Positions 10,785-56,400 of a stretch of DNA of 64,000 nt are shown here, piece by piece. A program made the translations under genes and the position numbers. Position 1 is the first letter of the stretch; each line of letters opens with the position of its first letter. Origin of the DNA: Adineta vaga (taxonomy: Eukaryota > Animalia > Rotifera); NCBI GenBank assembly GCA_021613535.1, contig CP075492.1:13826001-13890000 (forward strand), written 5' to 3'. The notes under the pieces were generated by a model. That model saw only the letters and a program-made list of their open reading frames with translations, was not told the DNA's origin and ran no database searches.

Positions 10785-11219
10785 ATGAATATCGATAAGA
10801 AGAGTACGACTACTATTCCTTCGTCAGAATCACAAAACAAAACTTGGAACCCTTTAGAAGAATCTCGAAAGCAGAAATTTTGTGTTCAACGTACTCCACC
10901 ACTTTGTCTACGTCAATATGTTCGATCTACTATCACTAATGTTCATGGTGATGGACCATGGAAACCAGCTGGTCTCAATCGTTACATTAAACCTCTAACA
11001 GCAGGAGAAAAGGAAAAACTTCATCAAGAAGCTCAACGTATCAAAAATAAACCAAAAATAGAAATTCGACACAAAACTTCTAAGGGAGAAGCGGAAATAC
11101 CATGGCGTCCATCTGGTCTTAGAAAATATGAATCCGTACCCTATTTTGATTCACCCAGTCTTCGATGGTCTCTTCAAGATGTCAAACATTCGATGGGTAT
11201 TTCAGACAACAAAAACTAA
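10785..11219 (+). CDS. 144 aa basic protein with two PW[KR]P[AS]GL repeats, function unknown
   Basis: Intronless ATG ORF; GPWKPAGLNRY and IPWRPSGLRKY; AATAAA near 11272. Confidence 0.65.
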   Translation: MNIDKKSTTTIPSSESQNKTWNPLEESRKQKFCVQRTPPLCLRQYVRSTITNVHGDGPWKPAGLNRYIKPLTAGEKEKLHQEAQRIKNKPKIEIRHKTSKGEAEIPWRPSGLRKYESVPYFDSPSLRWSLQDVKHSMGISDNKN

Positions 11220-11304
11220 TTCATCTTAATATTCATCGAATTTTATTCTGATTTAATAGAATTAAAAATACAATAAAAAGTACATTGAATATATCCACTC
11301 ATCA

Positions 11305-13221
11305 CTAATGCCAATATTTTCTGATATGTTCTGGATCAGTCATTCTAAACATTCAAATTTCGAAAGATATATAATGAAAGAAATCCTATACAAGAAGTTA
11401 TTCTCACTTATAGCAATGATTTCCATATCGACATTTTTCTTTCATGAAATCATCTGGATGTGAATATTTTCTCATGTGATCAGGTGCTTTACTAAAACAA
11501 AATAATATCTTTATTTAATCACATGTCTAAAAAGATATCCGATTTACTCGTAACATCCTTTTCCATATCGACATGGGATTTTTCTCGAAAGATCATGACG
11601 AGATTCTTCCGGATGAGAATATTTCTTTCGATGTTCAAAATCATGCCTAATTTTAAAAAAAGTTAATTATTTTTTCATTCAATTGAATCGAATTGATCAA
11701 TTACCTGAAACAATCAGATCCATAACGACATTTTGCCTTTTCGAACTGACTATTGCCCAAACCAATATGAAAATCGGAATCACCTGAATGTATAAATTCT
11801 CTGCGATGATCAGATTCAACACTTAAAAACAAAATTTTATTAAACGATATTCTTAATATTAAAATAGAAATACTTGTAACACTCTCGACCATATCTACAC
11901 GGACGACGTGAACCAACTATCGAATGAAATAAAACTTCATATTTATCTTTAACAAAATGACTAGAATACATACAGAGTGTTGTTGTTGCCATTGTTGTTG
12001 ATGATGATGATGAACTAGCAGAACGTGGAAGTTTACCTAAAAGAACGCAAATCGTAGTTTTTCGGTATATCTATCTTGAATAATCTTACTAAGTTCATGT
12101 CGAACATCATCGGATACTTTGAGATAGCATACATCATCGACCGAACAGAAGTTTTCATGGAATATTTTAACAATAGCACCAAGTGATGGATGTCCTTTCA
12201 TTTGTAAATAAGTTGATTTAGCACTGGCACGTTCATCAGGATTTTTCTTTAATAAAAGTTCAATAATTGCTTTATAACCACCTTCACGTGGAACGATAAT
12301 ATCTCTTGCATGAGGATTATTACAGAAACTATCATAATCAGCTTCATTTTTCCATGGAAATTTCTCGAAAAATAATACATAAAACATGACACCAGCTGCC
12401 CATGCATCTGATTTTTTATGAAGATGTCGGGACATAATATTACGCGAATTACGACGTAAGAATTCTGGCGAAGCAAAATAAACTGTATGAGCTTTATTGA
12501 CATCGACTGTAATTTGTGGAGATTTAGTGTTCATCTTTTCTACCGTTCCAAAATCGATTAATTTTACAAAAAAATGTTGTTGATGGCTTTGAACAATAAC
12601 CAAATTTTGTGGTTTTATATCACCATGAATAATATTTAGTTTCTCAAGAAAGATCAATGCACGTAGAACATAAACGATAATAATAATACCAAATAAAAAC
12701 TTTTGTTGTGCTTCTCGATGAGCAGCATTATTGAACCAGAATGTTAAGAGATCAGTTGCAGCTAATTCCATTGCAATACAGATATTTTCTTTTGTAAATT
12801 TACAACCATAATATTCAATAACAGGATGATTGTCTATATCAATACTTTTAATTAATCGTAAGAAATGAATTTCACTTTTGATTTCTTCTTGTATGCCGGG
12901 AATATTATTCATGATTTTGATTGCTACAATACGATTACGTCTTCGATCTTGCGCTTTATAAACTTGTCCAAAACCACCTCGATTAATAAATTGAATCAGT
13001 TGATATTGAACACCATCGATTTCAATTTGTTTCAAATCATTTGTTCCACCAGCTTTATTATCTACAGGAGTTTTTTGAAAATTTAATAATTTACCCATTT
13101 GTTCAATTGACGCTTCGTAATTTCTCTTATTATTTTGATGTTCTTTAGCGAAATGGTTTGCATGTTGAGCATTATGTATCATAATTGAATCTTGTTGATG
13201 ATCTGATGGTCCGGCTCCCAT
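11305..13221 (-). CDS. 525 aa non-RD Ser/Thr kinase with four C-terminal PBZ (zf-CCHH) fingers (exons 13221-12090, 12036-11974, 11916-11874, 11821-11705, 11646-11548, 11491-11408, 11344-11305)
   Basis: MGAGPS start; RGGFGQV, VAIK, HGDIKPQN, DFG, ASPE kinase motifs; six 52-63 nt GT-AG introns, all phase-consistent; four C-x5-C-x6/7-H-x5-H motifs each starting CRYG. Confidence 0.9.
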
Positions 13222-14260: not shown

Positions 14261-15495
14261 TTAAGCAACTGGATTACGGATTTGAAAATAGTTTTCAATC
14301 CATTGATTGAGTTCATCGATATGATAACTAAAGGTTTCTTTATCAGGTTCAGCTTTCAAAGCTAATTTGCTATCGTAGATCACATAGAAACGAAATGGCC
14401 ATGATCCGTAAGTAAGATGAAATGTATTATCCATATTGTCAACTAACATTGGCATTTCAAATTTTAAATCATTTTTGCATTGTTGAGCATGAGCAATTCG
14501 TTGTTCGATTGTTGTTGGTTGATCGACACATGAAATCGTTCTACCTACTGGCCATTGATCACGAGCATGTGCTTCAGCAATGTAAATGGTCAAGAATTGC
14601 ATTCCAGCAGACGCATGCGAGCGAAAGAGCGCGCTAAACAAAGAAATCTTCTTTTATAATATCGTTGTGATAAAATAGGAAATACAAACTTCATTCCTCC
14701 AGCAGACGCCCGAAATGGAGGTCAGCTAGTCGAGCCAGCTAACAGTACCAATGGTTGACCAGCTGGAATATTTGAAAAAAGAGTTGTTGAAGAACCTTCT
14801 GACGTATATAAATCAATATCACGAATACATTCATTTTGTTGGACTAAACCTTGGGTGACTTTATTATGTTTTACTAAAAAATAAATATATCATAGGTAAA
14901 CATGAGCTATAATGACGTCGCAAAACGTACCATAAAAAGCTTCTTTTACTGCGGGTTCATCTGGAAAACGATAGAGAGCAGTACGCAATGCATTTACATC
15001 ATAGTATCCGAAATGTTCAACAACATACTGTTGAATTAAATTCAGAATGCAACTAAAATGTTCGAACAAAATCTCTCAACATTCTGACAGAATTGAATAC
15101 AATAAGACTTACGTAATCGCAGCTTCATCTTTATGATACGCATCGATGAGATCCTGAATTGATTCGGATAAACGAATACGTGTTTCATAAGCGATCATCT
15201 CGCGAACGGTCTCTATCGAAGGTAATTCATTCGATGTTTTAATCGTTTCAAAACCCATATGACCAGATGTAGGAAAAAACATTAAACATCGTGCTCTTGA
15301 AAACGAATCGTCATCTGAATCATCTAGGTTAGGTTTTGGTGGAGGTTTTTTTTGTTGTTTCGGTACTGGAGGAGCCGTTGCAGATGCAGCTTTATCATTG
15401 GCGATTGCTGCAGTCGTCTTTTCTGCAATGGTAGTTTTGTCTTGTTGATGGCTTTTGGATGCAGTGCCATCAGAAGACTTTTTACTATCGGCCAT
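14261..15495 (-). CDS. 353 aa iodothyronine deiodinase-like selenoprotein, Sec at codon 219 (TGA 14724-14722) (exons 15495-15113, 15052-14931, 14873-14690, 14633-14261)
   Basis: PLVLLAGSTS-U-PPF, FLTIYIAEAHARDQW and LVDNMDN..YGSWPFRFYVI match deiodinase motifs; introns of 60, 57 and 56 nt are in phase; SECIS downstream. Confidence 0.9.
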
Positions 15496-15856
15496 TCTAT
15501 CAATACTTCATCTGAATAAGGTATTTTAACACATGAAAAATGTATGCACGAGAATAAAACGAAGATTATATATACGAGTAGAACGTGTGATGTATTATTG
15601 CACCATCACGTCGTTATATATGTGAGTCATAATAAAATTTAGAGATGTAAAAGAAAATAGGAGAGATGTCGCTCATACTTTCGTTGACATATACGAAGAA
15701 AGACAATAGTTGACGTGGAGAATTGAAAAAAATGTAATCTTTATGAGATGCAAATAAAGAAGCATTCTCTTAAAAGTCTCGCGGAAAGAACGAAAAAAAC
15801 GGTAGTTGGAATTTTCATTGTCATATGTTTCAGAATATTTTCTTCGAGCATTTATT

Positions 15857-17551
15857 ATGCCTAGTAACAAAATGAACGTTGATCAACGTATTATACGTAT
15901 ATCAGACATTGCGGAAGAGTCTGGTGATTTTCTGATGCCTATTAGTGGTTACGAAGATATGCCACTTGTTCCTCTCGACATCGCCGTGGAACCATTGATA
16001 TCTTTGTTACCGATGATTCAAAGCTACGCTTATGCTGCAAAAGAACGTTGTAAGCATCCACCGCCGAACGGGCTGACTGTTGATGAATCCGCATCAATTA
16101 TGCTTTATTCAATGGGATGGGAACCACTTGATAAATGTCTTTATTATGCTTTGAATGCTACACTTCGTTCAGTTGAAAGAGGCAAGCTGAAACCATGGTT
16201 TTTGTACTTGAAGTTATTTTTTACTGCACTTTCACGGCTACCATCTAAACATCAATTTATTTTTCGTGGTGTAAAGCAAGATTTACACAGAGAATATCCA
16301 AAAAGTAAAAGCATCGTATGGTGGGGATTTTCATCATGCACTGTTTCAATTGACGTCTTACAGTCGGATCTTTTCTTGGGTAAAACGGGTATACGAACAA
16401 TGTTCACTATTGAATGTGAATCAGGCAAAGATATTCGAGAACATTCATACTTTTCATCTGAAGATGAAATTCTTCTTCTTGCTGGCACACAATTCAAAGT
16501 GATTGGTAATTTGGATCAAGGTAATGGTCTTCATACTATTCAATTGCAAGAAACTCAACCACCGTTTCCATTACGTCCACTTCTGACTACTGATTCTATT
16601 TCAAGTACGACGGTTTCTGGTAGTAATAAAAGTCTTTCTTTATTGACATTAAGCTTTTCAAAGAGATACCCATATAGTGATCAAACCACCATAGCAAAGT
16701 ATGACACCTGTAGTTGTGAATGAGCAGCGAAAAATTATCCTAACTATAAATTTGACCGATGTATCATTTTAAGGAGTAATTTTGAGTATGAGCTGAAAAG
16801 AGAAACTTCATTATTACGGTCACCTAATAATATTTCCAGCCAGATTCTCTCCATACATGCTCACATCCAGTTTTCATAGAACGAAACAATTTGGGAACCT
16901 TCTTGTATGCGTACACCGTTATATGCAACACTTTCAGAATAGCTGCTCACGTATATACCAAGGCCGCGCCACTTCTTTCTCCAGTTTTCACCTATACAAA
17001 CTGCCAAGTAGTTTCTCTATTCCTAAGTAACGACACTGATATCATAGTCCTATTAAGAAACAGCTTTAAACGAAGTAATTGCACGACTTTCCTACTAACC
17101 GGTTTGATCTGCTTTAAATCTCTTTCTTACTCACGGGTATCCCTTTAACACTACCAAAACTTTTTTCGAGTCATGCTGGTCTTTCTCCTCTTAAGGCAAA
17201 CCAGACCGCGATAACTATAAAAAGTCAATATTTTCAGATTCTACTCTCCATGGAATAAAATCAATTAATACGAATAATGCACCAAGTTCTCAATATTCAA
17301 TGCCTGGATATCAATCATATGATCAGAAACAACCTCAGAAAGCGAACGCTAAATCTTCTAAACTGTCTTCGGCAGGGAATGACTACGACGAAGAACTGAT
17401 ATCTGAATATTCAATGCCTAAATATCAATCATATGATCCGAAACCACCTCAGAAAGCGAACTCGAAATCTTTTAACCAACCAGAGACAACCCATACCTAC
17501 ACCCTCGAAGATCTCTTCGTTAACGATATCCAATCTATGATGATTGACTAG
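15857..17551 (+). CDS. R-S-E (NAD:arginine-type) ADP-ribosyltransferase with low-complexity tail (probable exons 15857-16619, 17238-17551)
   Basis: [33 protein letters not shown] motifs. A phase-1 splice to the 17300 ORF is in frame but inferred; unspliced, the ORF ends at 16723. Confidence 0.8.
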
Positions 17552-31088: not shown

Positions 31089-34000
31089 TCACTGTTTCTT
31101 TCGCAGACGATCTACTAAACCTTGATTGTCTTTTACTTCAGAATGGTCAGAACCATATGCTAAACGAGCAGCAACGACAGATCGTTCAGCATGTTTAAGA
31201 GCTGAAGTAACATTTCCTAGATCTTCATATGCTCGAGCCGTGTTGTAATACATAATAGCCATCGACTGATGATTAGGAGAAGGTAATGTTTCTTGAATTT
31301 TGAGCGATTTCTCGTAAAATTCAACCGCAGCGGATTTATTTTCTATTGATGAATATATTGAAGCAATGCCACTGTAGAGCGAGACTAGTGTTGGATCATT
31401 CGATGGCAGTTTTTTCTCTCGAATAGCTACAGCTTTTTCATAATATTTAAGAGCATTTTGTTTATCGTCCATTGAACTGTAAACATTAGCGATGTTGTTA
31501 TAGTTAGTTGCTAAATCAAGACCATCTGTGGATGAAGATTTTTCGCGAATTGCGATTGACTTCTTATAATATTCGATGGCTTTTTCATAATCTTTCAATG
31601 AATAATGTTTTGATGCAATGTTAGTATAGTTTTCAGCCAATACAGGATCATTGGCAAGAAGAACTTTTACTCGAATCGCTAATGCTTTCTCGAAGTATAA
31701 CAGAGCATTTGATTCATCATCAATCCAAGTATAGGTGTTAGCAATATTATTGTAGTTAATGGCTAATTCCAATTCATCTCTTGAAGGTGATTTTTCTCGC
31801 ACAGAAGCTGCTTTTTTGTAAAAAGAGACTGCTTGTACGTAATCTTTCATATTAAAGTACATTGAACCAATATTGTTGTAAGTTGACGCCAGTGTCAAAT
31901 CATCCGAAGATAATTTTTTCTCTTGAATAGCTAAAGCTTTTTGGTAATATTTAAGAGCATTTCGCTTATCTTCTATCGAACTATACGCCGCAGCTATATT
32001 ATTGTAATTAGTAGCCAATTCTAAATCATCTGTTGATGACGATATCTCGCGAATGGCTATCGATTTCTTATAGTATTCAATTGCTTTTCCATAATCTTTC
32101 ATTGAATTATATTTTGATGCAATATTAGTATAGTTTGTAGCCAATACAGGATCATTGGCAAGAAGAACTTTTACTCGAATCGCTAATGCTTTCTCGAAGT
32201 ATAACAGAGCATTTGATTCATCATCAATCCAAGTATAGGTGTTAGCAATATTATTGTAGTTAATGGCTAATTCCAATTCATCTCTTGACGATGATTTTTC
32301 TCGAACAGAAGCTGCTTTTTTGTAAAAAGAGACTGCTTGTACGTAATCTTTCATATTAAAGTACATTGAACCAATATTGTTGTAAGTTGACGCCAATGTC
32401 AAATCATCCGAAGATAATTTTTTCTCTCGAATAGCTAAAGCTTTTTGGTAATATTTAAGAGCATTTTGCTTATCTTCCATCGAACTATAACTAACTCCAA
32501 TATTATTATAATTAGTCGCCAATTCTAAATCATCTGTTGATGAAGATTTCTCGCGAATGGCTATCGATTTCTTATAGTATTCAATTGCTTTTCCATAATC
32601 TTTCATCGAATTATGAATAGACGCGATACTAGTGTAGTTTACTGCTAAAATAGGATCATCGAGAGAAAGAACTCTTTCTCGCACAACCAGTGCTTTTTCA
32701 TAATATTGAAGTGCATTTGACCAATCATCCATCCAGCTGTATGTATTGGCAATACTATTGTAACTGATGGCTAACTCAGCATCATCTCTTGTCGATGATT
32801 TTTCTCGGATTGTACTGGCTTTTTTGTAAAACAAAACGGCATTTGAATAATCCTTCAGATCAAAATAGACCGAAGCAACATTGTTGTAACTCGTGGCGAG
32901 TATTAAATCATCAGAAGACAACTTCTTTTCTCGTATTGCTAAAGCCTTTTGGTAGTATCGAAGAGCATTTGATTTCTCATTCGTCCAACTATAGGTTGCA
33001 CCAATATTGTTGTAGGTAGTTGCCAGTTCGAGGTCATCTGTTAAAGAAGACTTTTCACGTATATGAGCTGCTTTCTTATAGAATGACACTGCTTTTGCAT
33101 AATCCTTCATATTAAAATATACCGAAGCGATATTGCTATACGTCGAAGCAAGTATTAAACTGTCTGAAGACAATTTCTTTTCTCGAATCACACGTGCTTT
33201 CTCGTGAAATTCAAGTGCTTTCGAGTATTCTTTCATAGAATTATATACTAATCCGATATTACTATACGAAGTGGCTATATCTCGATGATCTTCAGGAAGT
33301 AGTTTTTGTTCAATCGCAAGTGATTTCTCGTAATAGGAGAGTGCCTTCTCATGTTCGTCCATTGCATCATAAGTTAAACCAAGGCTGTTATATATCATAG
33401 CGAGATCACGATTCTCTGAAAAAGAAGATTTGTTCTGTATTTTGAGTGCTTTTTCGAAGAACGAAAGAGCAACGGTATATTCTTTCATTGCATGATGTGT
33501 GGATCCGATCTTGCTATAGGTTGTAGCTGCTTTATTTGACTGACAAAGCTGTGGATTGTTCTGACAAATGTCACATGCTTTTTGATACATTGAAAGTGCT
33601 GTCGAGTAGTCTTTCATCGAGTGATAAACGGATCCGATATTATTGTATGAAGTGACGAGTGATGGATGGTTGGGAGGCAATGTAGTTTGTTCCATTTCAA
33701 GTGACTTTTTGTAAGATGCTAACGCTTTTTCATGATCATTCATCGAACTATAGATTGTGCCAAGATTATTATAACTAATAGCTGTATCAGGATGGTTTGG
33801 AGGAAGTGCTCGTTCTCGAATATTAAGCGCTTTCTGATAGTACGATAATGCAGTTGTCTTTTCATCCATTGAACTATACACCGACCCCAAATGATTGTAA
33901 GTATTGGCAAGATTAGGATGATCTTCTGAAAAAGCTTGTTTTTGGATATTCAATGCCTTTTCAAAACAAGAGATTGCACGAGGATAATCATCCATATCAT

Positions 34001-36209
34001 CGTATATTGAGCCGAGACAATTGTATGTACTGGCATTATCTGGATGATTAGCAGGAAGAGATAGTTCTCGAATTTGTCGTGCTTTTTCATAATATTCCAG
34101 TGCTTTCTTTTTGTCACCCAGTGAACTATGAATGGATCCAAAATTGCCATAGCTTGTAGCTAAATCTGGATGTTTTGGAGGAAGAGATCTCTCATAAACA
34201 TCAAGTGCTTTTCGAGAAAATTCGAGAGCCTTTAAGTAATCACCCATCTCTTGGTGGAGTCTACTAATATGGCTAAACATTGATCCACAATTAGGATGGT
34301 TTTGTGGAAGTGTCTTCTGTCGAATTGCGAGGGCTTTTTGATACAATGAGAGTGCTTTATCAAAGTCCGCTAGTGTAAGATGCACTGAACCGATACTTGT
34401 GTATGTTGTAGCAAGTAAAGGATCATCTGGAGGAAGATGTTTCTCTTCTATATCTAGTGCCTTTTTATATGACGACAGAGCAGATTTGTAATCACCTAAT
34501 GATAGATACACTCCAGCAATATTATTATATGTTGTTGCCAGTGATGGATCATCAGCTCCCACGACAGCTGTTTTACTTCGCAGAGCCTTATCATAGTATG
34601 CAAGTGCGGTCTTGTAATCACCTTTTGCACTAAACACATATCCCAGTTGATGATTAAGATGAAAATGCTTATTTGCGTTCTCTTCATCGGTTGAGTCGAC
34701 TTGTGTGCCATAAATATCATGCGCTTGATCAAATTCACCCATCTTCAACATCAAATGACCAAGTCTACTTAGTGGATCACCTTCGCCAAGTTCTTTTCTC
34801 ATATAATCACCCAAAAGTTTCATTTGTGGATCATTGTCACTTGTAAGAGATAGATTGACTTGCCAAAATCGATCAGCAAGTTGTTTTGTATCCATAATTC
34901 GAAATACAGTATGCATTGAAAAAAGCATTTCACTTTCATACTGATATGTACTTTCTTTGTCTATAAATGCATATGGAACAAATGAAACCTTTGGATTGAT
35001 TTCCATTTGAAAGAGAATTGCAAATGTTTTATCATCTTGACATGCGTTTTTGGCGAAATTTCGTGATATTTTCTTATCCAATGATGTCGATAAAAAACTA
35101 TTAAATGAAAGAAGACCACCTTGACTTGTTTTTATCTTTTCTAATTCTTCAGGTGCCATACCTTGGCCACGATAAACAATGAACTTTTCACCTTCACTCG
35201 TTTCTGATTGTTCTCTATGTAGTTCTACAATTTTTTCATGAAGATCTTTCACAAAAAATCCCATTTTCATGATTGCTTCAACATCTTGTGTTCTCAATGC
35301 TCGATTTAATGAGCCGTAAAGAAAAGATTCTTTTGTATACCATGAAATAGCTAGATCAGTCGTATACTCTACTGCAAATTCATCGATAAGAGACAATTGA
35401 TAATAACTATCGGCATATTTTGTTTGACAATATTCGATCAGTTTAGTTTTTGCTTCTGAATCATGTTTCATTTCGAGTAAGATTTCTTTGAGTAACTGCG
35501 TATACATATATGATTGATCTAATTCGTTTTCCACTGAGCTTGGAACATCCATTCGACGGATGATACTAATCGGTGTCAGACTTCCAACTAGACCACTATC
35601 AGCTTTGATCTTTTGAAAGATCTCTTCCATAGTGAACAAGATTTCTTTTACTTTTTGTGAATATTTATTAGCCCAAAGTAAACGTTGTCGTTTTGTTTCA
35701 CTAAATATATAAATAGCTTCAACCTGTGGTTTATCATGGATGAGTGGCAGGAGTTCTTCTCCAAGAGAATCTGATACGATAATAAAAATCTTCTTATCAT
35801 GAATATTGTCGACATGGTTGACACATTGTTTGGAATTAGTACATGTGTAGATTATAGATGTAATACGTTGAAGTTTTGTTACTGAATCATGATAGAGCTT
35901 TTTCGACAAATCGATACCTTGATCCGCCCAAATAATAACAATATTTTGATTAACATCGTGGGTCGAATGTATTGAAGGATTCTTATTCTTTTTCTCTGAA
36001 CTGTGTGGTTTGACAGCAGTAGTATTTGATTCAGTTGCCTTGTTATTTATATTTTTGTTCACAGTGGATTGTGGCGAAGAATTTACTGTTTGTAAGTTAG
36101 AAATAATAGGTATAGCGATGTCCTCGACTTGTTTATCATTTGTAGTGGAACTGGACACTAACGGCTCAGAAATAACATGAACAGTCGGGGAACTAGGTCC
36201 ACATCCCAT
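31089..36209 (-). CDS. 1706 aa receiver-like + R-S-E ADP-ribosyltransferase + TPR-array protein (copy A)
   Basis: MGCGPS start; WYTKESFLY, VYRGQ, FLSTS, ESEMLF; about 28-29 42-aa TPR units; intronless. Confidence 0.92.
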   Translation of the reverse strand: MGCGPSSPTVHVISEPLVSSSTTNDKQVEDIAIPIISNLQTVNSSPQSTVNKNINNKATESNTTAVKPHSSEKKNKNPSIHSTHDVNQNIVIIWADQGIDLSKKLYHDSVTKLQRITSIIYTCTNSKQCVNHVDNIHDKKIFIIVSDSLGEELLPLIHDKPQVEAIYIFSETKRQRLLWANKYSQKVKEILFTMEEIFQKIKADSGLVGSLTPISIIRRMDVPSSVENELDQSYMYTQLLKEILLEMKHDSEAKTKLIEYCQTKYADSYYQLSLIDEFAVEYTTDLAISWYTKESFLYGSLNRALRTQDVEAIMKMGFFVKDLHEKIVELHREQSETSEGEKFIVYRGQGMAPEELEKIKTSQGGLLSFNSFLSTSLDKKISRNFAKNACQDDKTFAILFQMEINPKVSFVPYAFIDKESTYQYESEMLFSMHTVFRIMDTKQLADRFWQVNLSLTSDNDPQMKLLGDYMRKELGEGDPLSRLGHLMLKMGEFDQAHDIYGTQVDSTDEENANKHFHLNHQLGYVFSAKGDYKTALAYYDKALRSKTAVVGADDPSLATTYNNIAGVYLSLGDYKSALSSYKKALDIEEKHLPPDDPLLATTYTSIGSVHLTLADFDKALSLYQKALAIRQKTLPQNHPNCGSMFSHISRLHQEMGDYLKALEFSRKALDVYERSLPPKHPDLATSYGNFGSIHSSLGDKKKALEYYEKARQIRELSLPANHPDNASTYNCLGSIYDDMDDYPRAISCFEKALNIQKQAFSEDHPNLANTYNHLGSVYSSMDEKTTALSYYQKALNIRERALPPNHPDTAISYNNLGTIYSSMNDHEKALASYKKSLEMEQTTLPPNHPSLVTSYNNIGSVYHSMKDYSTALSMYQKACDICQNNPQLCQSNKAATTYSKIGSTHHAMKEYTVALSFFEKALKIQNKSSFSENRDLAMIYNSLGLTYDAMDEHEKALSYYEKSLAIEQKLLPEDHRDIATSYSNIGLVYNSMKEYSKALEFHEKARVIREKKLSSDSLILASTYSNIASVYFNMKDYAKAVSFYKKAAHIREKSSLTDDLELATTYNNIGATYSWTNEKSNALRYYQKALAIREKKLSSDDLILATSYNNVASVYFDLKDYSNAVLFYKKASTIREKSSTRDDAELAISYNSIANTYSWMDDWSNALQYYEKALVVRERVLSLDDPILAVNYTSIASIHNSMKDYGKAIEYYKKSIAIREKSSSTDDLELATNYNNIGVSYSSMEDKQNALKYYQKALAIREKKLSSDDLTLASTYNNIGSMYFNMKDYVQAVSFYKKAASVREKSSSRDELELAINYNNIANTYTWIDDESNALLYFEKALAIRVKVLLANDPVLATNYTNIASKYNSMKDYGKAIEYYKKSIAIREISSSTDDLELATNYNNIAAAYSSIEDKRNALKYYQKALAIQEKKLSSDDLTLASTYNNIGSMYFNMKDYVQAVSFYKKAASVREKSPSRDELELAINYNNIANTYTWIDDESNALLYFEKALAIRVKVLLANDPVLAENYTNIASKHYSLKDYEKAIEYYKKSIAIREKSSSTDGLDLATNYNNIANVYSSMDDKQNALKYYEKAVAIREKKLPSNDPTLVSLYSGIASIYSSIENKSAAVEFYEKSLKIQETLPSPNHQSMAIMYYNTARAYEDLGNVTSALKHAERSVVAARLAYGSDHSEVKDNQGLVDRLRKKQ

Positions 36210-42043: not shown

Positions 42044-45000
42044 TTAAAACGCATCAGAAGAATCTGTGGAATTTTGTTTATTGCGCAGATGGTCCACCAA
42101 CTTTTGATTCTCTTTCACCTCCGAATGATCAGGACCATAAGCTAAACGAGCACTTTTAACGGACCGTTCAGCATGCTTAAGTGCAGCTTCACAGTTTCCT
42201 AGATCTTCGAATGTTCGTGCCGTGTTGTAATACATAATAGCCATCGATGCATGATTGGGAGATGATAATGTTTCTTGAACTTTGAGTGATTTTTCATAAA
42301 ACTTCACAGCAATGGATTTATTTTCCATTGATGAATATATTGAGGCAATACCACTATAGAGCGAAACTAGTGATGGATCGTTCCATGGCAGTTTTTTCTC
42401 TCGAATAGCTAGTGCTTTTTCATAATAGTAAAGCGCACTTTTTTTGTCTTCTGTTTTTGTATATGCAACAGCAATATTGTTGTAGATAGTTGCTAGCTCA
42501 AGATCGTCTGAGGATGAAGATTTCTCACGAATGGTAATAGATTTTTTATAAAATTCTATTGCTTTCTCATAGTCTTTCATTGAATAATAAATCGACGCAA
42601 TACTGGAATGATTTGCAGCCTGTATCGGCTCATTATTTGCGTCGGATTTTTCCGGATTGCTACTGCTTTCTTGTAATATCGCAAAGAATTTGATTCATCA
42701 TTAATCCAACTGTAGGCAACAGCAATATTGTTGTAATTAGTTGCTAATTCTGAATTGTCTTCGGATGAACTTGATTGCTCACGAATGGCGATCGATTTCT
42801 TATAAAACTCGATTGCTTTCTCATAGTCTTTTAGTGCACTATGTTTTGCTGCCATGCTAGAATAAGTCGCTGCTAGCGTGGAATCATCAGCAGGGAGCGT
42901 TCTTTCTCGGATTGCTACTGCTTTCTTATAATATCGCAAAGAATTTGATTCATCATTAATCCAATTGTAGGCAACAGCAATATTGTTGTAATTAGTTGCT
43001 AATTCTGAATTGTCTTCCGATGGACTAGATTGCTCACGAATGGCGATCGATTTCTTATAAAATTCGATTGCTTTCTCATAATCTTTTAGTGCACTATGTT
43101 TTGCTGCCATGCTAGAATAAGTCGCTGCTAGCGTGGAATCATCAGCAGGGAGCGTTCTTTCTCGGATTGCTACTGCTTTCTTATAATATCGCAAAGAATT
43201 TGATTCATCATTAATCCAATTGTAGGCAACAGCAATATTGTTGTAATTAGTTGCTAATTCTGAATTGTCTTCCGATGGACTAGATTGCTCACGAATGGCG
43301 ATCGATTTCTTATAAAATTCGATTGCTTTCTCATAATCTTTTAGTGCACTATGTTTTGCTGCAATACTGGAATAAGTTGCTGCCAGTGTACAATCGTTAG
43401 CGGGAAGAATTGTTTCACGAATAGTTAGTGCTTTCCTGTAATATCGAAGTGCATTTGGCTCATCATCCATCCAACTGTATGCATTGGCAATATTATTATA
43501 ATTGGTAGCTAACTCAGCATCATCTCTTGTCGATGATTTTTCTCGGATTGTACTGGCTTTTTTGTAAAACAAAACGGCATTTGAATAATCCTTCAGATCA
43601 AAATAGACCGAAGCAACATTGTTGTAACTCGTGGCGAGTATTAAATCATCAGAAGACAACTTCTTTTCTCGTATTGCTAAAGCCTTTTGGTAGTATCGAA
43701 GAGCATTTGATTTCTCATTCGTCCAACTATAGGTTGCACCAATATTGTTGTAGTTAGTTGCCAGTTCGAGGTCATCTGTTGAAGAAGACTTTTCACGTAT
43801 ATGAGCTGCTTTCTTATAGAATGACACTGCTTTTGCATAATCCTTCATATTAAAATATACCGAAGCGATATTGCTATACGTCGAAGCAAGTATTAAACTG
43901 TCTGAAGACAATTTCTTTTCTCGAATCACACATGCTTTCTCGTGAAATTCAAGTGCTTTCGAGTATTCTTTCATAGAATTATATACTAATCCGATATTAC
44001 TATACGAAGTGGCTATATCTCGATGATCTTCAGGAAGTAGTTTTTGTTCAATCGCAAGTGATTTCTCGTAATAGGAGAGTGCCTTCTCATGTTCGTCCAT
44101 TGCATCATAAGTTAACCCAAGGCTGTTATATATCATAGCGAGATCACGATTCTCTGAAAAAGAAGATTTGTTCTGTATTTTGAGTGCTTTTTCGAAGAAC
44201 GAAAGAGCAACGGTATATTCTTTCATTGCATGATGTGTGGATCCAATCTTGCTATAGGTTGTAGCTGCTTTATTTGACTGACGAAGCTGTGGATTGTTCT
44301 GACAAATGTCACATGCTTTTTGATACATTGAAAGTGCTGTCGAGTAGTCTTTCATCGAGTGATAAACGGATCCGATATTATTGTATGAAGTGACGAGTGA
44401 TGGATGGTTGGGAGGCAATGTAGTTTGTTCCATTTCAAGTGACTTTTTGTAAGATGCTAACGCTTTTTCATGATCATTCATCGAACTATAGATTGTGCCA
44501 AGATTATTATAACTAATAGCTGTATCAGGATGATTTGGAGAAAGTGACCGTTCCCGATTCTTCAGCGCCTTTTGATAATATGTCAAAGCAGTTGAGTTGT
44601 CTTCCATCGATCTATAAACAGATCCAAAATGGTCGTACGTATTAGCAAAACTTGAATGATTTTTTGGAAAAGCTTGTGTTTGAATCTCAAGTGCTTTTGC
44701 GAAATATGAAAGCGCTTGAGAATAATCACACATATCGTGGTATACTGAGCCGAGACAATTGTATGTACTGGCATTATCTGGATGATTAGCAGGAAGAGAT
44801 AGTTCTCGAATTTGTCGTGCTTTTTCATAATATTCCAGTGCTTTCTTTTTGTCACCCAGTGAACTATGAATGGATCCAAAATTGCCATAGCTTGTAGCTA
44901 AATCTGGATGTTTAGGAGGTAGCGATTTTTTTCGAATATCAAGCGACTTTTTCGAATATTCGAGAGCCTTGGAGTAATCACCCATATCTTGATGGAGTCC

Positions 45001-46875
45001 ACTTATATTACCATACATCGTGCCAAAATCAGGATGATTAGATGGTACTGACTTTTGGCGTATCTCGAGAGCTTTTTCATAGAAAGAAAGTGCCTTGTTA
45101 TAATCTGCTAATAGTCGATGGACTAAACCGATATTGCCATAGGTTGTGGCAAGTAAAGGATCATCTGGAGGAAGATGTTTCTCTTCTATATCTAGTGCTT
45201 TTTGATACGACGACAGAGCAGATTTATAATCACTTAAGGATTGATACACTCCAGCAATATTATTATATGTTGTTGCCAGTGATGGATCATCAGCTCCCAC
45301 GACAGCTATTTTACTTCGCAGGGCCTTATCATAGTATGCAAGTGCGGTCTTGTAATCACCTTTTGCACTAAATACATATCCCAGTTGATGATTAAGATGA
45401 AAATGCTTATTTGCGTTCTCTTCATCGGTTGAGTCGACTTGTGTGCCATAAATATCATGCGCTTGATCAAATTCACCCATTTTCAACATCAAATGACCAA
45501 GTCTACTTAGTAGATCGCCCTCACCAAGTTCGTTTCTCATATAATCACCCAAAAGTTTCAGTTGTGGATCATTGTCACTTGTAAGAGATAGATTGACTTG
45601 CCAAAATCGTTCTCTAAGTTGCTTAGTACCCATGATTCGAAACACTGTATGCATTGAAAAAAGATTTTCACTTTCGTACTTATACGTACTTTCTTTGTCT
45701 ATGAAAGCAAAAGGTACTGAGGAAATCTTTGGATTGATTTCCATTTGAAAAATAATCGCTACAACATTGATATTCTGATGTGCTTTTTCTGCGAAATATT
45801 GCGAAGTTTTTTCATCTAGCGTTGTTGACAAGAAATTATTGAACGAAAGAAGACCACCTTGACTTGCTCTAATCTTTTCTAATTCTTCAGGTGCCATACC
45901 TTGGCCACGGTAAACTAAGAACTTTTCGTCACCACGCGCTTTTGATTGTTCTCTATGCAACTCTACAATTTGTTCATGAAGATCTTTCACAAAAAAGCCC
46001 ATTTTCATGATTGCTTCAACATCTTGTGTTCTCAATGCTCGATTTAATGATCCGTAAAGAAAAGATTCTTTTGTATACCATGAAATAGCTAGATCAGTCG
46101 TATACTCTACTGCAAATTCATCGATAAGAGACAATTGATAATAACTATCGGCATATTTTGTTTGACAATATTCGATCAGTTTAGTTTTTGCTTCTGAATC
46201 ATGTTTCATTTCGAGTAAGATTTCTTTGAGTAACTGCGTATACATATATGATTGATCTAATTCATTTTCCACTGAGCTTGGAACATCCATTCGACGGATG
46301 ATACTAATCGGTGTCAGACTTCCAACTAGACCACTATCAGCTTTGATCTTTTGAAAGATCTCTTCCATAGTGAACAAGATTTCTTTTACTTTTTGTGAAT
46401 ATTTATTAGCCCAAGGTAAACGTTGTCGTTTTGTTTCACTAAATATATAAATAGCTTCAACCTGTGGTTTATCATGGATGAGTGGCAGGAGTTCTTCTCC
46501 AAGAGAATCTGATACGATAAGAAAAATCTTCTTATCATGAATATTGTCGACATGGTTGACACATTGTTTGGAATTAGTACATGTATAGATTGCAGGTGTA
46601 ATACGTTGCAGTTTTGTCATGGAATCTTGATACAACTTTTCCGATAAGTTGAGCTTAGGATCTACCCAAATAATAACAATATTTTGATTTACGACGTTTG
46701 TTGCATGTATAGAAGGATTTTTAAGCTTTTTATGTCCCGATGATGATGTTTTATTATTTGGTTGCTCTGAAGTATTAGTGGACGGTTGCTCTTCAATCTC
46801 ATTATGATTTGAATCGTGTTCGATTACCAATGAAATAAAATCCTCTTTGGAATTCTTGCTTTTCATACACCCCAT
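42044..46875 (-). CDS. ART-TPR paralogue (copy B), ~1610 aa if the 1-nt frameshift at ~42650 is corrected
   Basis: MGCMKS start; same architecture as copy A; restoring CGG GAA AAA TCC joins both ORFs (IREKSDANNEPIQAANHSSIASIYYSMKDYEK). Confidence 0.9.
42652..43360 (-). repeat. Near-perfect 255 bp (85 aa, two-TPR) tandem repeat, ~2.8 copies
   Basis: cggattgctactgctttctt recurs at ~42653, ~42908 and ~43163. Confidence 0.9.
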
Positions 46876-47465: not shown

Positions 47466-50400
47466 TTATTCAAACGAAAATGTTCTTGAACAATTGAAAA
47501 TAATATTTCCAACATGAGATGTCAGAGTTGGATAAGTATTATTTCGATTTTTCAATAATTGTTTCACAAATGCTAGAGGATTGATATGAAATCGAGCATG
47601 ATTTTGAATATTTAATAGAGAACGATGTTTTAACTCTTGAACAAATCCATCTGTTGTTATCCAACCATTTTCAAATGCATCTTCTTCATTTGCTGTTCGA
47701 GGTTTAGGACATAAAGATAAATATTGACAATATGCTGTTTGTTCTTCTATAGTTTGAAAATAAATCGTACCATTGAAGACAAATAATTCTACTAGCCAAT
47801 CGATAGGTAACTTGAAAAAAATCAAATCATAAGTCATTGGAATAGACGGAGGAATTGTCATGGTGGGTATGTTGACAAATATCGATTGATTACGTTTTAT
47901 TCGAGGTAAGAATAATCGTAATGTAGTAATGGATAATCCTTTAAATTGTTGTAATTGTCCCATTAACCAGTTTGCTTCGAAAGCATTCACAAAAATAATA
48001 TGTTCATTTCGATAGACGATTATCCAACGTGGAGGACGTAAATAATGATCTAATAATTCTTCTTTATTTTCAATTACTCGTTGAAATTCAGTTGTAATCC
48101 AAAAATTTGATTGCCAATTTTCCTCTTCACACATCGTTGCAAATGTTGAATCAGTAAATGCATATGCTAATCGACGAAATACTTTTGGTAATTCAATGAA
48201 ATTCATGACTGAATCATCTGGATCACATAATCGTTTGATTTCATCATGAAGAATTGGTTTACATGGTCGAAGAATTTCATAATGTTTTTGTTCATGTTCT
48301 TGTACACGTTCTTGTTCTTGTACTAATTCTTGTTCTAATTCACGTTGTTGTTCTTCATCATAAAATTGTGATAATCGTTGTTTCAATCCACCATAAGTAT
48401 TCATTCGTTCTAAAACAGCATGATGAATCTCTTCCGAAGCATGAATATTTGCATGTTGATATTGATTGATATAGATTTGCGATATAGTTTGTAAAGCTTT
48501 CGGTACACCATACATTCGTTTTAATTCAAGAATTTCTGGTGCTAAACATTTTTCAACTAATTCATCCATCATTTCGTCAGCGAAAATTTGTTGATTATTT
48601 GTCCAATCAATTATTTGAAAGGCACAGACTTTATGTTGATAACTAAGACTTTGTACAGACCAATGATATAATCCATCCCATGTTGCTCGTTGAGTATTTT
48701 CATAAACCCATCGTAGAATATCTTTCAATACAATAGGATCTTGTGAATGTGTTTTCAATGAAATAATTTGACGATGAACTTCATCTGAACTCCAAAATGT
48801 TAAGGAATGACCTTCACCTAATTTTCTCATTCGCATACATGCTTGTACGAATCGATCTTTAGTTAAACCATTACCAAGTGTAACTGCAGCTTTAAAACCA
48901 GTTGGAAATTTAAAATCAGTACCTCTAGTATGTACTTCATCGAGATAGATAACACATCGATCTAATCGTTCACTTGCAGGTGATGTTAAAAAAGAATGAT
49001 GATGAAATTGTCGATCACAAACAATGATATGATCGAACTCGAAATAAATTGCATAATCAATTTTTGTTTTATCAGATCGTTTCAACCAATTTATAGCTAT
49101 TTCACGATTTGTACGATCAACAAATAGAGCACCAACATCAAGAATAACATGAATTATTGCTTCAGAATTTGTAATTTCATTTAAAATCATTTCGGATGTA
49201 ATATTCACAGGTAAATATCGATATTTTTCATTTTCGACTTGTAATAGATTGTTAATAACAATAGCATCCGTATTTTGTAATTGAGATAAATCACGTTGTT
49301 GAATGTGAATAGGTAATAATAATTGTGTATCATTTGTACCACTAAATCCAGTAATCATTTTTGTTCGTACAGATGATGATAAATCCCAAGCAGATGCAAT
49401 TAATTTATGAGGAAATTGTTTTGCTTCTTGAGGAAAGACAAAATGATTGAGAAAATAATTGATGACAATCATATTGTATCGTAATAGTTGAAAAAGTTGA
49501 TGAAGTTCTTGTTGACATTCTTTGATATTGACTTTTTTCCATTGTTTAAGATTTTGTGGAATATCATTCTCATGTTCTTCTGCAATCCATTCAGTATAAA
49601 TTATTTCTGGATCTCGTTCTTCCTGATTTAAACGATCAAAACATTGTAAAATTTGTGAATCTTTTAATCCACTGTAATAATATGAAAGTTGCGTTAAAAC
49701 AAGAGCAGTATCAGGATGACCAAATTCAGTTCGATCTGCAGGAACATCTTTGGCTCGATAAGGTACAGCCATTAATCGATGAAAATTAACATTGAAATTA
49801 ACACCATAATTAACACGATAACGTTTTTTTAAACAAATGAATAAAACTTCACTTGATAATAAACCACGAAGAACAAGAAATAATTGAAGATCATCGAGAG
49901 AAAATCGATCAAGAAGAGAATCTATCGATGTATGAATATCTAAGACGAATGATAAAATACATTGCCGATCTGTTTTTCGATATGATTTTTGATTGAGCCA
50001 ATCATTAATAATCTTCACACATAATTCAGGAAATGATCGATGTGATAAGAAACGAAATTCTGGAAAAGCACTTTGATATTTTGATGCTTTATAAAAGACA
50101 TTCGTTGGATCATTGAGAGCAATATCTGCAGCAAATTTTTTTACTGAATTTAAAATTATTTGAATAAGTTGCCAACGTTCAACACCACCATCAATTCGTT
50201 GTTGTTGTCCAACTGTATAAATCAATTGATATTTACAATGTAAAATTTCATCTGATTCATCGAGAAGATCTCGTGCAAATGTTTTCAACCATCGTTGAAC
50301 AATTAACATGGAACGACTGGTATCAAATTCTTTTCGTCGACATTTATCAATTGTAAGAAGATCAAATGAGAGAAGATCTTCAGGTGATGTCAATATCACA

Positions 50401-53400
50401 TCACAATGATATAGTGCTTGTTGAAATCGATTATAAATGTGATTCATTTGTTCATGCGTAAAATTCATATCACGACGACAAACAAATGGTAAAATACGTC
50501 GATTAAGTAAACCACCTAATTTAAATCTTAATGATTGATAATTCATTGGAAATAATGATTTCAATACAATAATACGAATTAAACTTGTTGCAGATGAACA
50601 TAAACTAAGTGCTAACATTGGTATAATAACAGATGTTTTTCCTTCACCCATATTCATTTGCATAACGAGATTTTTCAATGTCGAAGAATCCGTAGAGAGT
50701 TCAGGTTGCATCATATGACGTGCAACATCCACTTGAATTTCACGAATAGTAATATTCATTTCTAATTCAAAGATTAACCATGGAAGATGTTCAGCTGGTA
50801 TCCAATTTGCATGTGGAATAGTAATGAGTTCTTTTTGAAATTCTTCGATTTTATTATACCAAGCAAAATGTAATGCACGTTCCAATTGTTGTTCAATAAT
50901 CCAATTAATTATTATACCACCAAGAAGTGTACATTGATCGTTAGTTAAGTGAAGAGAACGAGTTGATTGATGTTTTTCATTTAACCATAGCTGTTGAAAG
51001 AGAGTGATTAAAGTCGATGGTGTAGTTCTAGGTAATAAACCTATATCAAATAAGTTTTTATGATCAACAGTAATTGATTCTAATAATTCATTCCAGAAAT
51101 CAGTTGATTCTTGATGGAAAGATTCGAGAATTTGAATGATTTCTTCTATTGAAGGATATTTTCGTTGATAAATTTCACCGGATTGTAATTGTTTCCAACT
51201 CATTGCTAATTGGTTTTTGAAAAATTTACCAATTTCATAAAGAGAATTATTTTGATTATCAATTGATGTAAAAATTTCATTTGGAAATGTTTTATGTTCA
51301 TTGGTAGTTTTCATTACGATTGTTGAATTAACGATATGATTTGTATTTCGATGGAAATATTTCTGTTCTGCTTTTCGAAGTAGTTCTTGATTAATTTGTT
51401 TACTTGACGATGAAATTGATATTTGATTATCATCTTCAATCGATTTTTGTACAAATTCTTGTGAAGCAATAGAGATTCGATTAGGAAATGGAACAAGATC
51501 AAATGAACAGACAAGATTTTGAATAGTCATTAGAAATATATGAAGTTTTTGATTTAAATGCCATGATTTTAATAAGAATTTAATTTGATTCTTTTCTTCC
51601 GATGTAGCTAATCGACATTGATCTTTATAAGTATAACCATTTTCAAAACAATTTTTCATTTCTTCAAAAATTGTTCGACGTTCACCAGCAGAATGTTCAG
51701 ATGTAAAATCGATTGCATTCATTACAACAGTTGTATGTTGTATACTATTGTATTGAGTAAACGGAGGAAATGAAATGGAATTCAATGATAATTCTTGTAC
51801 TTGTAAAACAGTATTTAATATCTCCAAATAGATCTTTTTAATGCCATGTTTATTGGATATATAATGAAGAAAGTTTAGAAGTAATTTAAATCGTTGAATA
51901 TTATCAATTGTATCATTGTTGATCGTTGTTTTGAGTGATTCAGCTAATTTTAATAAACCAATCCAAATAATTTTCAATGAATATTCATCTGTTAACCATT
52001 GATTTAATGGAAAATAATTAAATTCAGAAAATTCTTTTAAATGTACATCACCCGAATGATAGATATCATTGACAAGTTGAATTAATTTCTGATTTTTAAT
52101 CATTGCATCCTGTTCAACAGTCGATTGATAATGTTCTTCATTTTTCACTGTTTCCAATATTTCTCTTTCAATCTCAGATGATAATCGAGCAATGGGATTA
52201 TATGAATGATGATAATCCCAATAGAGTTTAATTAATAATCTTTCATCATAATCATTTTCATTCATTTGCACTGCGGACAATGATGAATGCATAAAATTTA
52301 ATTTCTCACTGGTTTCAATCAATTTTTTTACTATTAAATAATAACCACAATGTTGCAAAGAATATAGAATAGTATCACCATTCCAATTGATATTCGGCAT
52401 AGAAGTATGATGATGTTGACAATATGTAGCTTTTGGTGAAATCATTGCAATTTGTTGAAGAATATTTAATGAAAGTCCATCAAATGGTTGATCACTCCAA
52501 CAACCAGCTGAATTAAGTAATTGAAAAGCGCGTTCCATTCCAGTCATTCCTGTATATTCATCAGGAAGTATATGTGATGTCAATGCATGTAGTAATGCTA
52601 AATATAACCAACCCGAAGGATTATCATTGGCTTGAATAAGACGTAATCGATCATTTAAAATAAAGACAAAATATTGATGTGCATCGGACTGGTTGATTTT
52701 CGTTGAATAAAAATATGTTGACGATCAGTAGTAGATGAAGATCGTCGTGTTGCATAAACATGTCCGAAAGGAATAATCAATTTTCGATGTTTAAAATGTT
52801 CATGAGTCGTTTTTGTCATTGTATTGATTGGTGATAAAAGTAAACCTGATTTTAAACCTGTTAATGTTCCTAACCATTGATTTTCGTCAATACACATATC
52901 AGAATATTCACGTGAAATAAAACATTTATGATTTGTTTGATAAGTAAAAGCAATTGCTAAACGTGATAAATAAATATGAATATTCATATCATCATGTATC
53001 ATGTATACATATGGTTTTTCATCGAGACGATTGAAATATCGTGTAAATAAGTTTCGAAATAGTAATGAAGTTTGATTAATTAACATTTGTGGATTTGAAT
53101 TATCTGTTGTTGTAATATAACCTGTTTCAAGATTTAAGATGTATGGTTTATGAGTAAGAAAATTTGAATCTTTAAAATGAATTGGTCGAAATTCAATGAT
53201 ATGATTTTTCATATTTTTCCAATGACTATATTCAGATACGAATTGAATTGGTAATTCAGCTTCTAGACAATTGGAAGGTATTAATTCAAAGACTTCATTT
53301 GTATTTAAATGTCGTTCATGAATAATTAAACGATGAAGTTGTTCATCAAAACGAAATTCATATTGAACTTTTTTATCATCATGATAATTATATTTTGTTA

Positions 53401-56400
53401 TATAAGTATTTGATGAATCAGAGATTTGTACTTGAAAAATTGACTGATCAAAAACACGAAGATATAATTCATTTGAAATGATTTTTTCCGGTAAATAATT
53501 CACACTCATTCCATTTACAAGAAAAATTCCTCGAAGACAATCAATAGATAAAATTGTCGTTTGATATTGGCCATCGTACCATCCATCATAAATATTCGTA
53601 TGTCGTTTCTTCCATTGTGCATCAATATTTTCTTCATGTCGAATAACAGACCAATAGAGAATAGAAAAATCATCGAGACTTTGATACGAAGATTTCTTAA
53701 GAAATAAAGCAATTGTTGGTTGAATTTTTCCTAAGATATGTTCACTAAATCGAACTAAATTTGTCAAAAAATGACTCATCGATGATTGTCTCTTATTTAA
53801 AATCATATTATCATGTATATTTGTAATTGATTTTAATAAGGAAATCATATGATTGTTTGAAGATAGAACGCAATGTATTCGATCGGTATGAATGGAAAAT
53901 GTTAATAAACATGCAATACCAATTGTCATGATATTTTGACGAAGTTTTTCAACTTCAATTAAATCCGAAGAAGAGATTGTTTGAATTGTTGTTGTAATCA
54001 TTTCTATCCATTTTTCACCTAAACGACGACATTTAAGAACTAAATCAATCATTTTCTGTTCTCGACTTGAATTACATAATGTTAAAATTCTCATTGTAAT
54101 CATTGTTATTACGACAAGTACGAATTCATTTTGCCAATTCAATGCACAATCATCTAAATGACGATTCAATCGTAAAATAAATTCATCAACAAAATAATCA
54201 TCCAATAATTGTTGATGCGATTCTGGACACCATGATGAAATTAATTCATCTACTGGACCATATTGTAATATCGTATGAATGATTAGTATAGCAACACTTT
54301 CTTCATTAAGTGATAAAGAATCCATTTCTAAAATAGACAATAGATTCCACCATTGTAATCGATGACCTGAACGAAATGAACCGAATTCAATGAATTGTTT
54401 GGATTTTAATTTCGTTTGAACATGTGAAAGATCAGCAATGACTTGATTTTGTACAAATTGTGTTGATTCAATTGAAAATTGTAAATGTTTATAATCAAGA
54501 TGATCTAATTGTAATGTTAATAATCGACATTCATCTTCAAGTTTCGGTGATCGAAAAGGTGTTAATTGAATTTGTAAACTATTTTCATATAAAAAATCTT
54601 CTATAGATGCAGTTGCAATGAACAGTTCAGCAATATGACTTTGTGTTAATGAATTTGTCGATGAAACTAATTTGACTTTATAATCTTTTGGACCAGTAAA
54701 TAATGGTTCTAGTTTTTGTGAATGAGGTCGAACTCTTAACCATTCATACATCCGATGTTCTGGTTGATATTGAGAACGATTAAGAAATTGCCAAAGAACA
54801 TCACGATAACATCGTAATTCAATTGGCATTCGTAATTCAAACATTACAGCTAGAGCACTTGCTTGATTTGATGGTATTGGACATTCATAAATTTCGACGA
54901 CAATATTTTCGGCTTGTTGTTCAATTCGACATCGATGACATAAGCGTTCATCGAATGAACTATTACATGTACATGGTAAACAAACGATGGAATTCATTAA
55001 TCGATTATATTTATCTTTTGCTTTACGTACTTCTTCGATCTTTGCATTCTTATCTTGTTCAATTTGAGTTTGAAGTTTTCGTAGACAACTCATAATCTTT
55101 GTTGAATGAGTAGCAAAATAAACACCAAAACTATTATCTTCTGTAATATTTTCAAACAGATCTGGATTCGATTGTTGATTAAATTTGTTGAAATAATCAT
55201 ATAAATCACGAGCATGAATCATATCATCGCGAGTAGGTAAAACAAAATATTCGAAAAGTTCTATTAGATTTGGAATATGAATACAATGATGTTTTAATCG
55301 TTCGAATCGTTTATCTTGACATAATTTGTGATGCATCGTACGAATCATTGTTAATGATGTAAGAAGAAATCGAGTATAACCGATCGGATCTGTTGATAAT
55401 TGTTTTGAACGATAATAATTTAATGCAGAAGTTTGATAATCATCAAAAAATCGGGATAACATTTCGAAATTATCTGGTTCACGTCGTGATGATGATGATG
55501 ATGATGCCGACGATGATCGATGAATCCATTCTTCACACCATGATCGAATCCAGAGTTCCATATAAGTCAATGCAATGCCACTGGAATATTTCAATTGATT
55601 TGTTAAAATATTGAAAGAAGGTATAAATTGTTCTTGGTTAATATCATCATTGATATGATGGATATTCAATGATGTTTTGTTTGTTATCTTTGAATTATTT
55701 TCATTTAAATAAGTTTTTAATGCATCACATGAATGTCGATAGAGTTCAGGATCATTAAGATTCGTTGTATCAATGATAAGTTGTTGATTTTTTTGTTCTT
55801 CTTCAATTTGAATTGATCTTTGCCAATTCATGGTTGGAAAGATTTTATCAATTTTCGTTTGTATATCATGTTTAATAAATTGAATCCAATCGTTGAGATC
55901 AATTGTATTCATTGTTAATAATAAACGATCGATTTTATTCAATCGACGAAGAATTTTTCGTATAGAATGAACGAGTAAATCAACAGATGTTCGTCTACTA
56001 TAAAGACTATCTGTCAAAAAATGTGTAATTAATAGTTTATAAACAAGTATACCACGAATTCCTAAACGTTTAGTTAAAATCATTTGAAAAACAACTTTAA
56101 TCGTCATCCATAAACCTGACCGACGAAAAGGTAATAATCCATTATTCCATCGAATTTGATCACGATATTTTTTCTTAAATTGTATTGATTGCTTTGAGCT
56201 ATCATCTAATGTAATATTTGGAAATTGTTGTATCCACCATTGCGTGACATAATGTGATAGAGGAACATCTCGAGTATCTGTTATTTCACGAGAAGATTTA
56301 TATGATTTTGAATATTCAATTGGATTCTTCATAAAATCAATTAATAATTCACAATGAACTGTTGAACTAAGACATGAACGATCTGAAAGTCGATAGGCAT

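Follow-up and report, generated by a model that had tools for sequence, protein, structure and literature searches.

A bdelloid rotifer kinase family combining a predicted N-myristoylation site with a tandem array of PBZ zinc fingers

The Adineta vaga gene I4U23_015279 (CP075492.1) encodes a Ser/Thr protein kinase with a myristoylation-type start and a tail of four tandem PBZ fingers, a class of zinc finger known to bind poly(ADP-ribose) (PAR). With a probability of roughly one half, the protein is a bdelloid-specific myristoylated signalling kinase that would be recruited, as judged from its sequence, to ADP-ribose chains at cytoplasmic membranes, outside chromatin. The gene lies within the 64-kb stretch of DNA that was analysed (hereafter the window), where its features are as follows.

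13221-12090, 12036-11974, 11916-11874, 11821-11705, 11646-11548, 11491-11408, 11344-11305, minus strand: the seven exons
12090..13221, minus strand: exon 1 (1132 nt), intronless, with the N-terminal lipidation motif, the helical segment and the whole kinase domain
13204..13221, minus strand: MGAGPS start, predicted N-myristoylation site (Gly2, Ser6)
13072..13200, minus strand: residues 8-50, predicted to form coiled-coil-like helices near the N-terminus (model confidence low)
12214..13005, minus strand: Ser/Thr protein kinase domain (PF00069, residues 73-336, E 5e-36)
12037..12089, minus strand: intron 1 (53 nt, phase 1); a TAG in its acceptor is the stop upon read-through
11974..12036, minus strand: exon 2, disordered Ser/Thr-rich linker
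11917..11973, minus strand: intron 2 (57 nt, phase 1), which the NCBI model keeps and transcript contigs splice out
11788..11899, minus strand: PBZ finger 1, encoded by exons 3 and 4 on either side of phase-2 intron 11873-11822
11613..11730, minus strand: PBZ finger 2, encoded by exons 4 and 5 on either side of phase-2 intron 11704-11647
11458..11573, minus strand: PBZ finger 3, encoded by exons 5 and 6 on either side of phase-2 intron 11547-11492
11308..11433, minus strand: PBZ finger 4, encoded by exons 6 and 7 on either side of phase-2 intron 11407-11345
11305..11307, minus strand: stop codon TAG
11242..11247, minus strand: candidate polyadenylation signal AATAAA

Exon 1 is 100% identical to the I4U23_015279 protein (P0001) in a sequence search. 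Joined, the seven exons give 1578 nt, that is, 525 amino acids and a stop; none contains an internal stop, and their phases agree. The six introns (53, 57, 52, 58, 56 and 63 nt) are all of the GT..AG type. Their removal, on which the original prediction depended, is confirmed at every junction by public transcript-like contigs: all six introns are missing from a run X6 contig and four from a run X1 contig, and one junction is skipped in run X5. The label of these runs as RNA is a guess in itself, but the skips are precise GT-AG excisions and mark the contigs as spliced; the DNA-like run X13 continues unspliced through intron 2. Junction 4 shows a one-base allele at the first exon base. The gene is expressed and spliced. 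The outcome named beforehand as refuting the prediction, transcripts that terminate at the unspliced stop near 12037, is contradicted by the splicing seen in three runs. No piece of any RNA contig spans this intron, although contigs omit rare forms and a minor intron-1-retaining isoform could be missed.

The NCBI model of I4U23_015279 (544 amino acids) carries intron 2 in frame as 19 extra residues; it is ruled out by the spliced contigs and by the orthologs, and the splice model first proposed from the DNA is the better of the two. The fingers had been described as hidden by micro-exons. The exons in question are indeed short, but at 40-117 nt they are mostly not true micro-exons, and the NCBI model already contains all four fingers together with the PF10283 match. 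Tail searches were run with public proteins, namely P0001, which differs from the splice model by the retained intron, and its orthologs. A 144-amino-acid open reading frame (ORF) without Pfam match (window 10785-11219, plus strand) is convergent with the kinase gene, and a run X6 transcript contig extends from the kinase gene into it, which suggests overlapping 3' ends.

The MGxxxS motif noted in the original prediction is present and is a property of the family: of 88 full N-termini, 83 have Gly2 and 75 fit MGxxx[S/T], compared with 4 and 1, respectively, of 118 unrelated kinases taken as background. The 14 sister kinases checked all start with MG, and the N-terminal helical segment also occurs in that family. 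Position 7 is Asp in I4U23_015279 and Lys or Arg in 73 of 83 relatives. At the sequence level, this conservation is strong evidence for selection on a predicted lipidation site.

Chk2 is an FHA-bearing RD checkpoint kinase. In Dictyostelium it also bears a PBZ domain, according to the passage of PMC5087659 that cites Ahel et al. 2008, and thus resembles the rotifer protein in having kinase and PBZ on one chain. It is the only precedent found for this combination, which is therefore known in itself; the rotifer protein differs from it in that FHA is missing, the HGD kinase is unrelated, the start is of the myristoylation type and the tandem fingers number about two to five, and the two fusions are probably independent. 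The original remark that the architecture is unfamiliar in animals is supported: the searches indicate that it is undescribed and, among named sequences, restricted to bdelloids, with kinase-PBZ proteins having their precedent outside animals. The tail-region search (27 candidates) returned only one PBZ protein from outside the family, a non-kinase, and no fingers occurred in the non-family kinases retrieved. A single kinase-PBZ cluster was returned by Atlas, with Rotifera as its commonest phylum. Neither the tail search, nor the retrieved kinases, nor Atlas yielded a non-rotifer protein with myristoylation motif, kinase and PBZ array, and a literature search found no paper on this kinase family.

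The alternative that survives best, albeit an improbable one, is a DNA-damage-response kinase drawn to PARP-made chains on chromatin, which would be the analogue of the Dictyostelium Chk2 and would serve break signalling in an animal without H2AX. Characterised PBZ proteins function in the DNA-damage response (PMC5087659, PMC4245714), A. vaga lacks H2AX and bdelloid LigE acquired PBZs after its transfer (PMC10665377), and fingers 1 and 2 are APLF-like. However, the myristoylation-type start is strongly conserved, a Pfam scan finds no FHA domain, residues 1-70 contain no SQ/TQ, and there is no clear NLS. LigE, APLF and PARP-PBZ are strongly induced (log2 7.3, 3.5 and 6.7 in the first comparison listed by Moris et al. 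2024; PMC10809525), whereas the entries listed in the radiation and rehydration core-response tables S3-S5 of that study include no kinase-annotated identifier in the range expected for either A. vaga copy. That range was itself inferred from a deiodinase-like neighbour, the locus tag being absent from the papers. The absence speaks only weakly against a radiation-induced role because many checkpoint kinases are not induced either, the mapping is inferred and the comparison covers the entries listed. The role in DNA damage or desiccation that had been proposed for the kinase thus finds no positive support here.

The four fingers match PF10283 at 69 bits (curated Pfam cut-off 22.7), as the original prediction had proposed; three stretches of P0001, and four of the A. 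steineri ortholog, pass the cut-off singly. The zinc ligands are spaced C-x5-C-x6-H-x5-H exactly in fingers 1-3, while finger 4 has one additional residue between Cys2 and His1 (x7). Beyond these four, the half-finger motif C-x-Y-G-x-x-C-Y/F does not occur in the six-frame translation of the window. Finger 1 is followed by an APLF-like H-x-G-D-S-D-aromatic extension, and the human APLF tandem PBZ is the sole significant solved-structure sequence match (E 4e-7 with P0001, E 1e-16 with the family profile), running from finger 1 through this extension and the linker to finger 2. Finger spacing, aromatic pocket, post-finger-1 motif and an approximate linker length are thus shared with APLF (PDB 2kqb, 2kuo); APLF differs in having two fingers rather than four, an FHA domain, a Ku-binding motif, an acidic tail and no kinase domain, and the Arg of its CYR motif is partly kept in the rotifer protein. 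The predicted structure of the A. steineri tail contains four small confident modules, whose top match is APLF (2kuo; probability 1.0, E 5e-5), followed by Nab2 fingers and then the CHFR PBZ. Relative to A. steineri, uncorrected pN/pS is 0.44 in the tail, 0.27 in the kinase and 0.79 in the linker; these values show constraint on the tail and, more than elsewhere in the protein, on the kinase.

In APLF, Y381 and Y386 contact adenine and R387 contacts phosphate (PMC6264785). Tyr or Phe occupies both tyrosine-equivalent positions in all four fingers, while the phosphate-binding position (R387/R429 in APLF) reads Asn, Arg, Asp and Lys in fingers 1-4, so that finger 2 retains the Arg. Because the aromatics are present throughout and the Arg position varies, the array is a credible PAR binder by avidity, with fingers that are predicted to be unequal. 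In a result cited in PMC6264785, the tandem arrangement improves PAR binding about 1000-fold over that of a single PBZ.

Less probable than the DNA-damage reading is a tail that is partly degenerate or binds some other adenine ligand (poly(A) or other RNA, free ADP-ribose, a nucleotide messenger) and is no PAR reader. The poly(A)-binding zinc fingers of Nab2 are the second-ranked structural match of the tail (E 3e-3), the CYR Arg is lost from fingers 1 and 3, and across the family the middle fingers often have Asn or Asp at this position and the last fingers frequently read C-T-K. On the other hand, the C-x5-C-x6-H-x5-H spacing is that of PBZ and not of CCCH fingers, the APLF match is the stronger one in both sequence and structure, and 24 of 29 first fingers have Arg or Lys at the phosphate-binding position.

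The kinase domain has a complete set of ePK motifs: the VAIK Lys (K102), the alphaC Glu (E117), Asp-x-Lys-x-x-Asn within and after HGD199-201 (K203, N206), DFG223-225, an APE-like SPE251-253, the subdomain IX Asp (D272) and the subdomain XI Arg (R331). A protein kinase fold is adopted in the predicted model. All named matches at E<1e-20 are bdelloids (Adineta, Rotaria and Didymodactylos), and an exhaustive profile search found nothing outside the family above about 35-38% identity. The nearest outsiders, at 30-35% identity, are sister kinases from environmental metagenomes (P0122, P0124, P0175, P0268 and others), which share the MG start, the helical segment and a kinase free of introns; they lack PBZ, and many of them carry CxxC motifs at the C-terminal end. 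In P0175, P0263, P0267, P0268 and P0270, the C-terminus has two to four CxxC-type Cys repeats with no Pfam match listed, apparently the same kinase chassis fitted with another kind of metal-binding tail. In one metagenome contig (L014 625-4190; L015 2-3288), a canonical PARG gene split by introns precedes a sister kinase (P0268) on the same strand, at a distance of about 390 nt. This PARG neighbour occurs at one of four sister loci with neighbours and at none of the three others, and its position is possibly due to chance.

In a tree, the bdelloid family (SH-aLRT 92), the sister group (97) and DYRK/HIPK-like kinases (100) form separate clades, and family and sister group join with 89; the tree was a quick, midpoint-rooted one with long branches and without named reference kinomes, and does not settle the origin of the family. 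The best solved-structure sequence matches, HIPK2 and HIPK3 of the DYRK family (E 6e-22), have a non-RD loop like the rotifer kinase. However, the matched region is confined to roughly the first 170 residues and the HIPK activation-loop Tyr motif is missing; orthology with HIPK/DYRK, suggested by these PDB matches, is ruled out by the separate clade. A more distant, tail-less kinase with MG start and HGD (P0284; L097 4953-6125) forms a long branch beside the bdelloid family.

The HGD in place of HRD, correctly noted in the original prediction, had been taken there as a pointer to innate immunity. Its strongest form would be a receptor-type immune kinase whose fingers sense ADP-ribosylation by pathogen toxins or host ART-TPR enzymes and which signals as IRAK/Pelle do. 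HGD is invariant in the family (98 of 98 members), and ART-TPR genes are frequent nearby. However, the reported link between non-RD kinases and immunity concerns receptor-linked kinases (PMC8463890). The Pfam scan of the protein finds neither a death domain nor a receptor ectodomain, and neither IRAK nor Chk2 is among the solved-structure matches at E<1e-15; apart from its non-RD loop, the kinase has no recognisable IRAK/Pelle features or kinship. The motif is also labile, since the sister family is mixed (HRD 11, HSD 6, HGD 1, HND 1), and HIPK/DYRK kinases are likewise non-RD. The ART neighbours vary by locus and may be there by chance in an ART-rich genome. HGD is a better pointer to regulation that dispenses with activation-loop phosphorylation than to any pathway, and an immune kinase of this kind, which overlaps with the preferred reading, is doubtful, a little more so than a tail with another ligand.

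A catalytically minor scaffold, whose kinase fold would be an interaction platform for a protein that chiefly tethers PAR to membranes, is very unlikely: the glycine-rich loop (N-R-G-G-F-G) has another residue in place of its first glycine, and in some non-RD kinases activity is low or dispensable (PMC8463890), but the catalytic residues (Lys, Glu, Asp, Lys, Asn, DFG) are invariant or nearly so in the 21 relatives compared, in what is the most constrained part of the protein.

The family extends across Adineta and Rotaria, with at least two copies in A. vaga. Database proteins have 1-5 complete fingers, most often four, the low counts being partly due to shortened annotations. The A. vaga paralog I4U23_012650 (L001 8001-9972 and 12067-13619), about 7.6 Mb away on the same chromosome record, has four fingers and the same introns and adjoins an ART-TPR gene. 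The intron plan of I4U23_015279, an intronless kinase exon followed by two phase-1 linker introns and phase-2 finger introns, recurs in A. steineri, in I4U23_012650 and in a five-finger Rotaria socialis gene. Every finger is cut at the identical codon by a phase-2 intron; therefore exons 4-6, each of which joins the last part of one finger to the first part of the following one, are symmetric units. Duplication or loss of one such exon would shift the count by exactly one and may account for the variation in finger number. A Didymodactylos carnosus copy (L101 2036-2940) cannot date the fusion, because it ends inside the kinase C-lobe and its 7.4-kb contig contains no finger motif.

On the simplest reading, an older intronless myristoylated kinase would have acquired an APLF-like finger pair in bdelloids, and the array would then have expanded and contracted by duplication of symmetric phase-2 exons. 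Horizontal transfer of the kinase is possible: its exon is intronless and has no close named relative outside bdelloids, its nearest kin being the environmental metagenome sequences. In the same lineage, PBZs have been appended to other enzymes, namely LigE (PMC10665377, PMC6264785) and a PARG with PBZ repeats (PMC4245714), both found in A. vaga; LigE ligates DNA and PARG erases ADP-ribose, whereas the present protein is a kinase with a membrane-anchor motif.

In the gene neighbourhood, synteny with an aldehyde dehydrogenase gene extends to A. steineri. An ART-domain ORF lies 2.6 kb from the kinase gene, and ART neighbours differ between the family loci, so their proximity may be chance in an ART-rich genome. 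This ORF (window 15806-16723, plus strand; PF01129) is intact at 305 amino acids, of which NCBI calls only a 70-amino-acid product. Two large intronless ORFs with ART and long TPR arrays (window 31092-36209 and 42580-46875, both minus strand) begin with MGC, a possible myristoylation/palmitoylation anchor. The window also holds a deiodinase-like gene (14261-15495, minus strand; PF00837 match in its last piece), which NCBI splits into two genes and which reads G-S-T-S-stop-P-P-F at the expected selenocysteine site; if the inferred mapping is right, it may be FUN_015287, induced by rehydration and radiation (PMC10809525). Two long overlapping-frame ORFs with DUF6606, DUF3638 and DUF3645 (47469-56887, minus strand) are probably one giant gene.

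In the preferred reading, that of a membrane kinase recruited to ADP-ribose, N-myristoylation would tether the protein to membranes, and the tandem fingers would bind poly(ADP-ribose) or close-set ADP-ribose marks with avidity, as in tandem APLF. Binding would concentrate or cluster the kinase, possibly with help from the N-terminal helices, beside ADP-ribosylated proteins, or bring it to its substrates. Since a non-RD kinase may dispense with activation-loop phosphorylation, location itself could be the switch. Splicing, the conserved catalytic residues, Gly2/Ser6, the APLF match, tail constraint and the shared intron plan all count for this reading, as do the two MGC-start ART-TPR genes in the window. 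Evidence against it includes the phosphate-contacting Arg, present only in finger 2, Asp7 where the family has Lys or Arg, and the DNA-damage functions of characterised PBZ proteins. ART-family enzymes add a single ADP-ribose, which is a further point against. PBZs favour chains over single ADP-ribose (PMC5087659). Literature that counts in its favour comprises the use of PBZ sensors to report cytoplasmic PAR (PMC5964205) and the PBZ-array PARG (PMC4245714). A tentative extension, itself improbable though slightly less so than the DNA-damage alternative, is that the kinase would deliver the output signal of a cytoplasmic ADP-ribose circuit peculiar to bdelloids, in which lipid-anchored ART-TPR proteins would write the marks and PARG-PBZ would erase them, and which would serve defence or stress sensing and not chromatin repair.

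Known PBZ readers, in the characterised cases, belong to nuclear DNA-damage responses, and no other animal kinase with PBZ was found in these searches. The symmetric-exon layout indicates how bdelloids may assemble PBZ arrays of varying length. If the preferred reading is true, ADP-ribose reading would be placed at membranes and coupled directly to phosphorylation, and the kinase may convert ADP-ribose marks into phosphorylation signals. All this would take place in an animal that tolerates desiccation and radiation to an extreme degree and has many genes for ADP-ribosylation.
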